Assembly (NCBI GenBank): GCA_965240325.2
Contig: OZ251235.1
Coordinates: 1,426,001-1,490,000 of the forward strand
Direction of reading: 5' to 3'
Length of the DNA stretch: 64,000 bases
Source: Rebecca billardiae RCC1528
Lineage: Eukaryota; Protista; Haptophyta
The notes beneath the pieces are model-generated. The model did no database searches and was not told where the DNA came from. It saw only the letters and a list, made by a program, of their open reading frames with translations. Positions 39,990-45,945 of the stretch are shown here, piece after piece. Each line of letters opens with the position of its first letter. Position 1 is the first letter of the stretch. Made by a program: the position numbers and the translations under genes.

Positions 39990-41003
39990 CGCCACCAGAG
40001 TCGAGAACACGATGCGACGTGACCGCAATGGTAAGATGACGAACGTTTTACCGCTGCGCCACCAGAGTCGACTCTGGTGGCGCAGCGGTAAAAAAACGCT
40101 TCGTCATCTTACCACGCCATCCTTTCGTAGCTTGCATGGCGAGTGGCGGCGTCGCGGCGTGCCAAGCGCTGGTCGTGTGCTGAACAGGGTGGAGCGGCCG
40201 AGGCCTTGCTGCGTCGCCCGGTCCCAGCTGGAATGTTCTGCGCTCTGTTCAACGGCAAAGCGCGGCTGGTGGCGGCTCCGCGCCTCCGCCACGCAATTGC
40301 GCATGAGCGGAAGAGTCGCCGCTACCCGCAGAACACGTGTGTCGGAGACAAGGAAACGGGCAGATGGCGCGTCGCGCGCGTCATGAAACTCGGTCGCGAC
40401 GCTCGCCAGCCCCAGCACACAACGATCACGTCCATTGGCGACCATCGTGCAGGCAGCTCTGCCACGCCGCTCGGCCGCGGCGACCGGCCTTGCACGCGTT
40501 CTTGCGGCGCCGACAGGCGGGACAGGGCCTCTCAGCTGCGGTCGTTCGACGTGAGCGCCAGGAGACGTGTGCCAGATTGCTAGCGAACGCGCACGCGCCG
40601 CGAGCAGCACGGCGTGCGCAATCGTCGCCAGCCGCAACGCCCAAGCGTCGCCCAAAGCGGCACAGCGGAAGAGGGCCCCGATCCGAAGGCAGTATGTCTG
40701 CAGCCTGGTTCCTTCGCGTCTGTCCAGCTGGCGTGGTAAGATGACGAAGCGTTTTACCGCTGCGCCACCAGAGTCGACTCTGGTGGCGCAGCGGTAAAAC
40801 GCTTCGTCATCTTACCATGACGTCCTGGGTTCGAATCCGCTGCGGTGCGCTTCTTTCACCTTTCACAGCAGCCGCTGCGGCTTTCGTGTCTCGCAGGAGG
40901 GTCGCCCACGACCAGGGATTCCGGACACATTTCCGAATGTCCGGCCCCCGGGCGGCTCCCGACTCTGGTGGCGCAGCGGTAAAACGCTTCGTCATCTTAC
41001 CAT
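39990..41003. repeat. Cluster of a 42-bp unit GACTCTGGTGGCGCAGCGGTAAAACGCTTCGTCATCTTACCA (5 copies plus 1 partial, both orientations, two loopless palindromes)
   Basis: Copies at 39990-40002 (-, partial), 40029-40069 (-), 40070-40114 (+), 40734-40775 (-), 40776-40817 (+) and 40961-41002 (+). Confidence 0.95.
40776..40850 (+). ncRNA. tRNA-derived (Gly-like) pseudo-tRNA / SINE-head with Pol III A and B boxes
   Basis: A-box TGGCGCAGCGG (40784-40794), stem CGTCAT-cttacc-ATGACG, B-box GGTTCGAATCC (40828-40838). The acceptor stem does not pair, so this is not a canonical tRNA. Confidence 0.6.
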
Positions 41004-41193
41004 GGCGCAACGCTCCTACTCTGTGTTTCGTCAACTTGAAGCTTTGAAGCTGCGTGGCGCGCATCACGCCCTCGGAATCTCGGATAGCTTATCAGTCGAC
41101 TCAGTTCTGGCAAGAGCTGACGGGCTAGCTTCCTGGTGAGACGACAGCGTGGCACTATGACTATCGTTCTGGGGCCCAGCAGGCCTGTTTAAC

Positions 41194-44100
41194 CTACGCA
41201 TTCACTCCGGACGGCTGCTGCTCTGCGCGTGACTTGGCTGTGCGGTTGATGTAGATTGTCACGAGCTTCAGCTGCGACGTGGACAACTCGGATAAGTGCG
41301 GCGTGAGCGCGTCGCCTAATACGAGGTACATGTCCACGAGGGTGAAAACGACGGCCTTCCGAACATCCGCAGACGGGCTCTTAAAGGCATCGAAGAGCGG
41401 AGGCAGCAGCTGCGGCAACAGCGGGTTGAGCTCGGACGCATCTATGCGCTGAACGACGCGGGACGTGGCGCGGATGGCAGCCTGCGCACACGCGTGCAGA
41501 CGCCGCGGAGGGGCACAGAAGAGTGAGCTTCCTTCACGCGCTTGTGTTGGCACGTACCATACCAGCCTACGCCGTGGCGCTCGGCGCGCACCTGCAACAC
41601 TGGCGCCTCTTCACGTGCTGTGACGGGGATCAGCACGCCTAGGCATCGGCGCGGCTCGGCTGCTTGCGCGAGCGTCTCCAGGCACTCCTCTGCGATACGT
41701 CGCACTTCGTGCGATGTGTCACGGTGAGCAGCAAGCAGCCTATGGGCACGCCGCGCAACACCATGTCGCCGCGTCATCACACGCTGGTGAGTAGGTGGGT
41801 GGGGGCGAGCGAGCGTACATCGCATCCAGCGCCGCGCGCACGAAGTGCACTACGCACCTGAGCATCACGTGCTCCGTGAACTGCGCTGTGCGTTCCGTGT
41901 GCTTGCGCACCAACTCCCACGTCGCTTGCGACGCTGCCTCGCGCACGCGCTCGTCGTCGCTCTCCACGAGTCGCAGCTCGGCCTGTCGCACATCAGCCAA
42001 ACACCACAGGGCAAGCATGCGTGATCAGGACGGTGCAGCAGTGGGGTGCGTTCGCAGGGTAATTCGACAGGTGTGCGCCGTGCGACGCACCTCGAGCACA
42101 TGTTCGAAGTGCTTTTGCCAGACAGCGTCCCCAGGGGGGAGGATGGATGTCATCTTCGCAATCTTGAGCAGGGAGTCGCGCTGCGCCGAGGCAGACTGGC
42201 CGGAAGCCAGCTGCCGGAGCAAGGTCGGCCTGCGACGCGATGAGGCGGTTGCGGGGCGCGATGCAGGGTGGCAAAGGTCACGACGAGAGGTGAGCACACG
42301 CGCGCTGGTCAAACGCACTGCGCAGCGCCTGCGGGCAGGTGGTGCGGGCGGTGCGGGGCCGCTGCGCACATGAGTGCCATCCACTCCGTCCCAGCGCCGG
42401 GGTCGGGCACTGAATCCAGCCCAGCTCGCGACGCAACGTCGCCTTGCGGCACGCTGGCAGCACCCGTGCCTGCTGCACGTTGCTGCAGGCCCTGCGCAGG
42501 CGTCTCGCGCAGTGGCGCACGCGCAGCAGGCTGCTCAGCATTCGGCATAGCCACGCGGGACACATGCGTCGTCTGAGCTGGAGCAGGAAGGCCTGCACGC
42601 AGCAGCAGAGTGGGCGCCAGCTCGTCGCCCTCCGCCATGGCCTCCGTGGCAAGGCGAGCATCCATCGGCCCGGGTAGGTGCCCAGCGGGGTCACCGGCAG
42701 CGCCGTTGCCGGCGCGGTCCCCCACTGTCCCAGGAAATGCCGGACGAGACGCAGGGCGGCCGCTGCGCACATGCGTGCTGATCTGCGCGTCCAGCTCTGG
42801 TGCACGGTCTGCCAGCGCGCGCTTGATGAGGATCTGCGCCGTCATCGGCATGAGGGCGACGACCCCGACGAACGAGACGGGCGCTGCGCGGTAGAGCCCG
42901 GCGAGCGCCGCCGCCGAGGCACGACGAAGCTCCGGCGACTTCTCGTTGAGGGTCCCGGCAGCTTTGTGCACGCAGGGGCGCATGTGTGCGGCGTGCGCGA
43001 GGTGCTGCGTCGCCTCGGGCATCTCGCAGACGGCCGCAATCTGGTCGAGAGAGGCTGACTTGATGCGCGGGCTGGTGTTGTCCAGCGTGCGCACCAGGGG
43101 CGTGATGAGCCGACTTGGCCCGAAAGCTGCGCGCAGCGCGCCAGCTGCACTGTCTGCGCGCGAGCGGATGACGTCCTTGGGGTCGTGCACGCGCGCGAGC
43201 AGCTTCGGCAGCAGGCGCTCCAGAGCCGGTTCCAGTGCCGGGCCGAGTACGTGCGCTGCAGCGCAGATGCACTCGAGGGCGGCGAGCACCACCTTGTAGT
43301 GCACGTCCGCAACGTGCGCAAGGATGCAGCTCACGACACGTTCTGCGCTCTGCGGGTGCAGGAGCTCGGCCTCGCGCTCAGTGCCCGCGAGTGATGCCAC
43401 CTGCGTGAGACACGATGCCCTCACAGACCACATGCCGTCGTCCCGCTTTGCGAGAATAGACGGCAGGGGCTCTTCGCCCGCGAGGACTGCGCTGCCAGCG
43501 GCAGGCATGCCCGCCTCCTCGACCGCGCGCGCGCCGCCATGCCCACCTGTTGTCGGTTGCCGCATTGCGGCTGCCGAGCTGTTGTGCTGCTCGGTGGGTT
43601 GCGCCGATGCTGCACTAGGGCCGCCCTCTCGGTCGGAGAGTCGCTGATCTGCGCGCGCGACCCGCCGCGCACCACCCCCGACGGCAGCGACGCCTGCAAA
43701 TCCGCCACGCTGCTGCACAGACGACGCAACCTCCACTCGAGCTGCCGAGGCCCGGCTGCCCGGCACTCCTGGGGCCGCTGCGGAGCCGTCGCTGATGCCG
43801 CTCAGCATCGCGCTGATTTGCCCCAGGGCGCCGTTCGCGCCTCCGTTGGCCGTCGCTGCCTGTCGGCTGGCCACCCGCGCGGCGCCTGAGGCTGCGGAAC
43901 CGAGCCTCGGTCCCGGAGCGGGTGCGCCGGCCGCCTCTGCGGCGCGCGCATCAGCGGCAGCGGCGGTGCGCTCTGCCGCCCCGCCGCGCACGCCCGACAG
44001 GTGCGACGCCGATGCCAAGCGGCGAGGCGCGCTGGTTGCGCGGGGCCGCTCAACAACCCCCGTCGAGGCAGAGCGCTGCGGGAGGGGCGGGCCGCCCCGC

Positions 44101-45945
44101 GCCCTGGCCTGCTCCTCCTCCAGAAGGCGTGCTGTCGGCGCGTCGAGCGAGTCGAGCAGCGTGCGGCACTGCCCGGGCAGGTGCGCGCTCAGCGCCCAGA
44201 AGGCGGAGCGCGCGAGGGCGCGGACCTCGGCGAGAGCGTCGTGGATGGCGGCCTTCAGCGCGTTGATGAGCACGTCCGCGTGTCGGTCGAGTGGTCCTCG
44301 CTCGCCCTCTTGCGCGGGCGGGCGCAGCGTGCGCGCGAGCAGGTCGAGGTACTCCGTCGAGTGCACGCGCACGCCCGCGGAGCGGTCGGACATCGCTGTC
44401 GCCAGCCGCGGCGCGATGCGCGGCGGGCGGACCTTCGCGATGAGCGCTCGCACGCACAGGTGCGCCGAGGTGGCGATCACGGCGATGGACTGCCCTGTGA
44501 GCCGGAGCAGCTGCGGCGTGTAGTGCTCGAAGAAGTCGGCAAACGGCTCACCCAGGGCGCCGCCAAGCAGCGTGAGCGTCACGCAGCACTCCTTCACGAT
44601 CTGCGAGCGAAGGTCGGCGAGCTGGGAGCCGAGCGGCTCGCGCAGCGGGCGCAGCGCCGCGAGCAGCGGCCCAGCGCCCTCGCCACCGAGCTCGGCCGCG
44701 CCGCCGAGCACGAGCGCCTGCAGCCGCCGGAGCGCCGCCTGGCGCGTCGTCCAGTCGGATGCCGTGCTGTCGCGCAGGTCGGCGCAGATGCTGTCGAGCT
44801 CGCGCTGCAGCTCGCGCTCCGAGTACACGCGCAGCGGCCGCACGTCGGCCGAGGGCGAAAGCGCGCCCGCGTCGCCGCCATCGCCGACGGCATCCGAAGC
44901 CGCTCCATCGGGCGGCGCTGCGATGCCGTGCGCAGGCGCGGCCCGCGCAAAGCCGGCCCCCGCCGGGCCGCCGACGCGCGGGCTTGGAGCGCGGGCAGCG
45001 CGCATGGACGGGCTCGACGCGCGCTTCACCATCGGCGCCGCCGATGCGGTGGGAGCCGCACCGCCGCCTGCGCTGCCGTTCGCGCCAGAGTGCGCGCCCG
45101 CATGGTCGTCGCCCTTCCGGCGCAGCAGCGCCGCCGCCGCCGCGGGCGTCATGGTGGCGTGCGATTGCACGCGGCCCAGCCGCTCGAGCAGCGGCCGCTC
45201 GACCGCAGGCCGCAGGCCTCGGCGCTGCAGCTCATCGATGAGGGGCTCCCCGACCGCCGCGTAGGTGTGCTCGAGCAGGACAGCAGCAGCGTCGCGCACT
45301 TGCGGGTCCGAGTCCTCGAGCAGGCGCACGGCGGCCGGCAGCATCAGGTGCACGCCTGCAGCGCGTGGGCCGTAGCGCTGCAGCGTGATCGCACACGCAG
45401 AGAGGGCCTGCTCACGCGCGCGCGGGTTCTTGTGCTCGAATGCAGGGCGCAGCTTCTCGACGCCGTGCTGCGGACCGACCGCCTGCGCGAGCGGGAGGCG
45501 CGCGCCGAGCGTTGCAGAGGGATGCGCGGCCGAGCGGGTGGTCAGCGATGACGGCATGGGGGGGGCTCCAGACGACGCGAGTGCGGCGGCAGGGAGCGAC
45601 GCGCGCGCTCACCTCCATGCAGCTGACGACGGTCTGCGCCGCGGCGATGCGGACAGTCACCTTACTGTCGCCCATTCGCTCGATGAGCTGCGGCCACAGG
45701 TGCTGCGCGTGGGCGGCAAACTCGGTGCCGGGCAGCTGTGCCACTCGCTGCAGGAGCTGCAACGCCCCCTGCGCGAGCTTTGGGTTGTTGTCGCTGATCA
45801 CGGGGCCCAGCGTGTCGACTATGCGGGTAACGTCAGCCACCTCCAGCGTCACCGAGCCGGAGAGCGCATCCTCAAGCTGCGCGAGCCCATCCAGCCGCTG
45901 TTTTGTCTCCCGGGACTTGAGCAGTTCGAACGCCGGCACCTCCAT
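41194..45945 (-). CDS. CLASP: CLIP-associating protein (CLASP), TOG/HEAT repeats, multi-exon
   Basis: N-terminal TOG (ISDNNPKLAQGAL, ERMGDSKVTVR), CLASP_N (DWTTRQAAL, LADLRSQIVKECC, IHDALAEVR), and C-terminal SPSADVRKAVVFTLVDMYLVLG...QLKLVTIYINR. About five GT-AG introns. Confidence 0.93.

Follow-up and report, generated by a model that had tools for sequence, protein, structure and literature searches.

The locus around positions 39990 to 41003 raises the question of what is formed by several closely spaced copies of one 42-bp unit that has a tRNA-like look and meets its own inverted copy without any spacer. The window analysed here is the whole stretch of 64,000 nucleotides, C18:1426001-1490000, from the 72 Mb genome of Rebecca billardiae RCC1528 (41 contigs, 60-76% GC). 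A first-pass annotation of this DNA had taken the unit as the half-tRNA-like end of an undescribed element that caps unrelated segments and joins them into chains of cassettes.

The copy order given by that annotation (< < > ... < > ... >) was reproduced. Exact copies of the 42-mer (unit u) were located at 40734-40775 (-), 40776-40817 (+) and 40961-41002 (+), degenerate copies at 40029-40069 (-) and 40070-40114 (+), and a 13-nt fragment at 39990-40002 (-), while no exact or near match to the 42-mer is expected by chance. The two palindromes were also present as described. The first two exact copies form a perfect 84-bp palindrome (P) centred on GTC/GAC, with a folding energy of -54.7 kcal/mol (z = -20) for the single strand, and the two degenerate copies form a near-perfect one, in which one arm has a 1-nt deletion and the other a 3-nt insertion. 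Because P forms a very stable hairpin, miRNA-precursor models of Rfam match it, and these hairpin-driven matches are spurious. It was likewise seen in the sequence that the copies of u diverge directly after ...TTACCA, which is where the element stops, and that the B-box-like GGTTCGAATCC is reached by the copy at 40776 alone. Two separate insertion events are represented in the window: a solo palindrome, which is old, and a young 269-bp block at 40734-41002 (Table 1). Apart from these, a satellite with a 225-bp (or 449-bp) unit fills 2177-25087 (~102 copies, 95% identity) and accounts for the flat GC of 0.757 and the negative GC skew of the window.

Table 1. Features of the two insertions in the window, and perfect 5-bp target duplications of the u family by contig.
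Feature	Position or contig	Strand	Remark
13-nt relic of u (positions 1-13), 26 bp left of the old palindrome	39990..40002	-	blastn-short of the 42-mer
Degraded target duplication of the old insertion, left copy CGCAA	40024..40028	.	4/5 identical to the right copy CGCCA
Old solo palindromic element (degenerate P), arms 40029-40069 (-) and 40070-40114 (+), tips TGGTAAG...CTTACCA	40029..40114	.	
Degraded target duplication of the old insertion, right copy CGCCA	40115..40119	.	
Host repeat F copy, main part	40232..40733	+	alignment to an F copy crosses the insertion site once the block is removed
Target-site duplication TGGCG of the young insertion, left copy	40729..40733	.	
Perfect 84-bp palindrome P (rc-unit + unit), left end of the young 269-bp insertion	40734..40817	.	
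A-box-like TGGCGCAGCGG within P	40784-40794		
First 143 nt of the 320-bp segment e, ending exactly at the next unit	40818..40960	+	99% identical to e on four other contigs
B-box-like GGTTCGAATCC in the tRNA 3'-half-like start of e	40828-40838		
Single 42-bp unit, right terminal inverted repeat of the young insertion	40961..41002	+	
Target-site duplication TGGCG of the young insertion, right copy	41003..41007	.	empty alleles have one TGGCG
Final 9 nt of the right terminal inverted repeat of F, separated by the insertion	41008..41016	+	
Duplication TGGCG	window		
Duplication GAATT	C5		
Duplication GAGTC	C5 (second block)		
Duplication AGCGA	C15		
Duplication GTGTG	C21		
Duplication CAGAT	C22		
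Duplication CGCAC	C37		
Duplication GTGTG	C1		
Duplication CGAGG	C11		
Duplication CCCAG	C11 (second block)		
Duplication CGCAC	C38		

The ends of the element were determined from the flanking sequences. Of the 18 blocks that have both tips, an outer TGGTAAG on one side and an outer CTTACCA on the other, eleven stand between perfect direct repeats of 5 bp, never of 6 bp, while four offset controls gave 0 duplications in 18 (binomial P ~3e-27 for the observed 11/18). Since the duplications lie outside TGGTAAG/CTTACCA, the tips are the TG...CA at the TTACCA side, where perfect 42-bp inverted repeats are found, and the GTC/GAC centre is internal. The first-pass annotation had placed the termini at the GAC end, had seen no target-site duplication and had read the palindrome as a replicated hairpin end or an end-to-end joint. 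None of these three claims could be kept. The duplications flank the outer TTACCA tips, and an empty allele removes exactly a block bounded by them; the CGCCA/TGGCG regarded as part of the repeats are the target duplications of two separate insertions, TGGCG for the young block and CGCAA/CGCCA for the old palindrome. Some duplications recur among the loci: two of them read CGCAC, which also stands once as a left flank and, in the form of its complement GTGCG, once more (L039, L047, L043, L042), and two read GTGTG (L035, L040). This recurrence hints at a weak target preference.

The empty allele was found in other sequencing runs. To the right of the insertion site, a single ORF of 1,082 aa (42309-45557, -) with CLASP_N / HEAT / TOG-type Pfam matches is encoded identically in three other runs. 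Contigs of ERR14847148 and ERR14847151 match the window at 46182-41003 and 40733-40064 with 99.4-99.98% identity, and the two flank matches overlap by TGGCG, i.e. the 269-bp block is exactly absent and one copy of the duplication is left. The filled allele is represented by a contig of ERR14847149 that crosses from the flank into the block. At the one polymorphic site looked at, no excision footprint was seen, the empty allele being footprint-free. The family is recently active. The empty-allele contigs contain the old palindrome up to 40064, where they end. Short-read contigs of the other runs stop inside the palindromic element at positions equal to window 40064 (L063, L066) and 40975 (L067); palindromes thus break short-read assemblies.

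The young copy in the window is composed of rc-u, u, e(1-143) and u, and its right end is a lone 42-bp unit and not a whole P. The copy on C22 has a lone unit at its left end and is still flanked by a perfect duplication. From these half-P ends, one 42-bp inverted repeat per end seems to be sufficient, which is the logic of an inverted-repeat DNA transposon and not of an LTR element.

The supposed cargo was traced to another repeat. The first-pass annotation had described a 706-bp segment with u as terminal inverted repeats, extended by CGCCA. This segment is the stretch between the two insertions, and the 619 bp between the palindromes (40115-40733) belong mostly to an unrelated and abundant repeat, F, which is 578 bp long, has its own inverted ends of ~27 bp (CAGGGGCGTTGCGCCAGCTGGAC... 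/ ...GTCCAGCTGGCGCAACGCTCCG) and occurs in at least 90 candidate copies. As some copies are 99% identical, F was probably active recently, and none of the copies carries u. The F copy in the window extends over ~40205-41016, with the young block in its terminal repeat, and after removal of 40734-41002 and one TGGCG the window is colinear with an F copy to the last base. Another F copy, on C5, has a 900-bp block with the duplication GAATT between its positions 351 and 355, and an uninterrupted paralogue of this F copy was found on C11. An F copy lies within 2 kb in 6 of the ~17 palindromic-element regions (L031, L041, L043, L046 and the window), and three insertions lie within an F copy or directly against one; this proximity may point to a common target compartment or to preferred insertion at F. 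A composite transposon made of the old palindrome, F and P was considered for the window and rejected, the outer flanks being mismatched and the right block alone being polymorphic.

The 42-mer is not confined to the window. In the genome, 35 copies of u were recovered with up to 3 mismatches in ~17 regions, almost always arranged head to head as rc-u followed by u, which is P. A segment e of 320 bp, non-coding, recurs between two Ps and gives a form P-e-P of ~488 bp, of which deletion derivatives occur as well. Its copies on C5 (two), C15 and C21 are 100% identical, and those in the window and on C19, C22 and C34 are partial. The segment begins with ~31 nt (t), which prolong the tRNA-like appearance of u and include GGTTCGAATCC, and it ends with an inverted copy of unit+t (unit + 31 nt), 91% identical between both ends, so that the ends of P-e-P are inverted repeats over ~115 nt. 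Element sizes across the family range from 33 to 900 bp, all non-coding, and the ORFs across e gave no Pfam match. At L034:4316-4642, the CCA/TG junction of P and e makes an ATG that opens a 108-aa ORF, which spans e and stops in the opposite unit; it has a GC-rich, low-complexity look and no Pfam match, and is probably due to chance. On C31 (L048:4029-4160), a different and shorter tRNA-like module (...CTCTGGTGGCGCAGT...GGTTCGATC) comes after a stretch resembling e (91% to e 250-306); this module may be a relative or ancestor of u. Among metagenome contigs, a 33-mer of the family had no match, and an 18-mer gave 10 chance matches without further similarity.

The rearranged copies were compared with respect to the centre of P. 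Internal junctions lie exactly at u position 1 in the window (e(143)/u) and on C22 (e-fragment/u), and the u(2-22) deletion on C15 and the u(1-40)/u junctions on C21 and C19 were also counted as lying there. Central deletions on C11 and C38 left relics of 33 bp and 42 bp with the duplications kept. An inverted dimer P-e'-P-e-P on C5, about 900-914 bp long, is 99.3% self-complementary, and the centre of its 914-bp palindrome also falls at u position 1. In long palindromes, hairpin or cruciform breakage at the centre leads to deletions, and hairpin-capped ends lead to inverted duplications. The centre-anchored rearrangements fit this known behaviour, and we infer that they are caused by the fragility of the P centre. 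The hairpin idea of the first-pass annotation is retained for decay and dimerisation inside the element, where the junctions are centre-anchored, but not for the element ends, which lie at the TTACCA tips.

Sequence variants were found in one or both arms. Variants confined to one arm pass from copy to copy (T38G at two sites on C5; an arm with A21G and T32C on C1 and C19), which shows that the duplex element is copied whole. Other variants are common to both arms of one palindrome (T29C on C11, T37A on C37 and the same 4-nt insertion in the central P of the C5 dimer), and these are not predicted by a plain inverted-repeat element.

The insertions are clustered. At least 10 of the ~17 regions have two or more insertions within 1.5 kb, several of them with separate perfect duplications, while roughly 30 sites placed at random in 72 Mb would give ~0.02 pairs this close. 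The clustering is most simply read as local hopping of a DNA transposon, and homing to resident copies or to F could also produce it. Of the proposal that the element joins or inserts at its own termini, it holds that copies adjoin far above chance, but the "cargo" of the supposed chains is the unrelated repeat F.

The likeness of the unit to a tRNA was then weighed. By eye, the A-box-like TGGCGCAGCGG at u positions 9-19, already pointed out by the first-pass annotation, agrees in 10 of 11 positions with the A-box consensus, and GGTTCGAATCC, a consensus B box, lies at positions 53-63 of unit+e, which gives a tRNA-like spacing of the two boxes. Unit+t contains an anticodon-arm-like hairpin, and u starts at tRNA-like position 1 and ends in the anticodon-like loop with ...CCA. 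ARAGORN found 0 tRNA genes in the window and at the 18 loci, the Rfam tRNA model left the 101-nt stretch without a match even at E<=10, a genome BLAST with unit+t returned family members only and no genomic tRNA resembling it, and no real tRNA gene lies within ~4 kb of any of the 18 loci. The assignment of u as the 5' half of a tRNA-Gly is therefore not supported. The related suggestions of half-tRNA priming and hairpin-telomere replication gained no support either, as neither a reverse transcriptase, a protelomerase, a primer-binding site nor a tRNA was found. A tRNA gene was rejected, and a tRNA-derived SINE does not fit either: there is no cloverleaf by ARAGORN or Rfam, a SINE-type A-rich or simple-repeat tail is absent, and the duplications are fixed at 5 bp. 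Ty-like Pol III-targeted integration was rejected because real tRNA genes are missing near the 18 loci. Judged from its motifs, unit+t looks like a decayed tRNA-derived Pol III promoter.

The u family probably represents non-autonomous inverted-repeat DNA transposons, namely a spacerless palindromic MITE and its longer derivatives. According to this explanation, u would be the terminal inverted repeat of a small non-coding transposon with the tips 5'-TGGTAAG...CTTACCA-3', and the minimal element P would be two u back to back with no spacer, 84 bp in all. A DDE-type transposase/integrase supplied in trans would recognise the 42-bp ends, and cuts staggered by 5 bp at insertion would give the 5-bp target duplications. 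New copies would land preferentially within ~1.5 kb of resident copies, and the missing spacer would make the centre of P fragile, so that internal rearrangements would begin or end at GTC/GAC. For the window, this would mean an old solo P at 40029-40114 and a young P + e(1-143) + u inserted into the terminal repeat of F. Movement would take place at the DNA rather than the RNA level. The tRNA-like start and the anticodon-like end of u are not explained by this simple model.

An alternative is a retro-type element moved by the integrase of an LTR retrotransposon, in which P would be a miniature LTR, solo P its solo-LTR form and P-e-P a TRIM/Cassandra-like element whose repeat carries a Pol III promoter. 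We consider it unlikely, although a number of features agree with it: the TG...CA tips and exactly 5-bp duplications are as in the resident young copia (TGTTG...CATCA, 5 bp), P on both sides of e is formally a direct repeat, the A-box-like and B-box-like motifs stand at tRNA-like spacing, and divergence is on average higher in solo Ps than in P-e-P copies, as for solo LTRs. No autonomous element with matching ends was found, and integrases need just short terminal signals. What speaks against a retro-type element is the structure of the copies themselves. P is followed by TGACG and not by the TGG... of a primer-binding site (e starts with TGACGTCC), no polypurine tract precedes the right P (e ends with ...GTACGTTA), and the other orientation is equally without both signals, unlike the resident copia, which has TGAGCTCA and GAGGGGGGG at the places of the primer-binding site and the polypurine tract, respectively. 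On this ground, the TRIM reading was rejected. Furthermore, LTR-type strand transfers would not be supported by the polymorphic young copy, which has on one side no more than half a P; the ~115-nt ends of P-e-P are inverted and not direct repeats; the sole TTTT in a Pol III transcript from u comes ahead of any repeated R region, within the opposite rc-unit; and the 18 loci without nearby tRNA genes give no sign of Ty-like Pol III targeting. The copia-type element itself, located outside the window at C18:1500622-1506726 (L061:6622-7022, L062:2326-2726), lies in a (TA)n tract and has identical 401-bp LTRs and 5-bp duplications, with the palindrome TGAGCTCA directly after the 5' LTR and GAGGGGGGG before the 3' LTR.

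The model of the first-pass annotation, in which the GAC side of a tRNA-half-like unit forms the ends and the loopless palindromes are replicated hairpin ends or joints chaining cassettes, would account for the many junctions exactly at u position 1 (in the window, on C22, C21 and C19, and at the centre of the 914-bp palindrome on C5) and for a unit that begins at a tRNA-like 5' end and ends with ...CCA. It is very improbable, as the target duplications and the empty allele both define TTACCA tips and not GAC ends, the supposed cargo, 578 bp long, is a repeat in its own right that has inverted repeats of its own and exists in dozens of copies without u, no element bounded by GAC...GTC and lacking outer units exists among the family copies, and no tRNA was detected by ARAGORN or Rfam. 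An assembly or read artefact, i.e. fold-back chimeras or an adapter, is hardly conceivable. Perfect loopless palindromes are a classic artefact of long reads, and short-read contigs of the other runs do break inside them; against this, the same palindrome occurs at ~17 loci with different flanks and site-specific 5-bp duplications, old copies have arm-specific mutations and central deletions, and both u and the old palindrome are present in independent short-read assemblies.

Among known systems, the MITE is an established kind of element, and the u family is probably a previously unannotated family of it. The mobile element expected by the first-pass annotation is real, and no described counterpart of it was found. 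Like foldback/long-inverted-repeat and composite elements, P-e-P has a complete mini-element at each inverted end, and the inverted dimers and the unstable centre of such elements are also seen in the u family; the u family is much smaller, however, and its ends are a single 42-bp unit and not subrepeat arrays. Cassandra has a Pol III-type promoter inside its repeat. The u family shares with TRIM/Cassandra the small size, terminal repeats around a short internal region, 5-bp duplications and A/B-box-like motifs, but differs in the absence of a primer-binding site and polypurine tract, in its inverted-repeat ends and in half-ended copies that appear mobile. From a hairpin-telomere or rolling-hairpin replicon it differs in that the palindrome centre is internal and the target duplications are at the outer tips. 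Human Made1 is derived from Hsmar1, and the mariner duplication is TA. Made1 is non-coding and consists of two 37-bp repeats plus 6 bp, 80 bp in all (PMC1784062). P resembles Made1 in being tiny, non-coding, nearly all terminal inverted repeat and a very stable hairpin; unlike Made1, it has no spacer (2 x 42 bp), 5-bp duplications and TG...CA tips, not TA, and its family also has P-e-P composites and no autonomous parent that was found. TG...CA tips and duplications of 4-5 bp are typical of Ginger2/TDD and LTR-element integrases (5 bp for TDD-4 and TDD-5, 3-6 bp for LTR elements; PMC2836005, PMC10045372), and the u family shares its tips and its 5-bp duplication with both. The Ginger2/TDD termini follow the pattern TGTNR (PMC2836005), whereas the tip of the u family is TGGTA, and no integrase-like transposase was found linked to the u family.

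Because of the TG...CA ends with 5-bp duplications, the enzyme that moves the family would be a DDE enzyme of the integrase type. Candidates were searched for in the genome. Outside the family, neither the terminal 13-mer (exact) nor the 20-mer (up to 2 mismatches) occurs; a partner sharing just a few terminal bases may exist. The missing end-matched partner contrasts with the very recent activity of the family. A shared gene beside the loci was rejected, the long ORFs beside nine loci being unrelated to each other. A scan of the genome for rve domains gave ~20 weak matches in ORFs of roughly 1,950 aa, about 19 of which are near-identical. The combination of recent activity, no element sharing the 42-bp ends and a TG...CA/5-bp signature as in the young copia leads to a further reading, which we hold to be quite unlikely. 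According to it, the family would be a new parasite of integrases: spacerless palindromic DNA, possibly snap-back copied from a Pol III tRNA-like transcript and lacking LTRs, primer site and polypurine tract, would be inserted by the integrase of a retrotransposon, or the element would be self-homing and drawn to resident copies.

For annotation, caution is needed with this family, as its hairpins mimic miRNA precursors and break short-read assemblies. What had looked like a tRNA-capped chain of cassettes is recast as a defined mobile family with exact ends, a 5-bp duplication and a presence/absence polymorphism. The family offers a natural experiment on the survival and breakage of long spacerless palindromes in a eukaryotic genome. 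It also provides a practical marker and, for the search for the enzyme that moves it, a clean substrate in an algal lineage that has been little studied.
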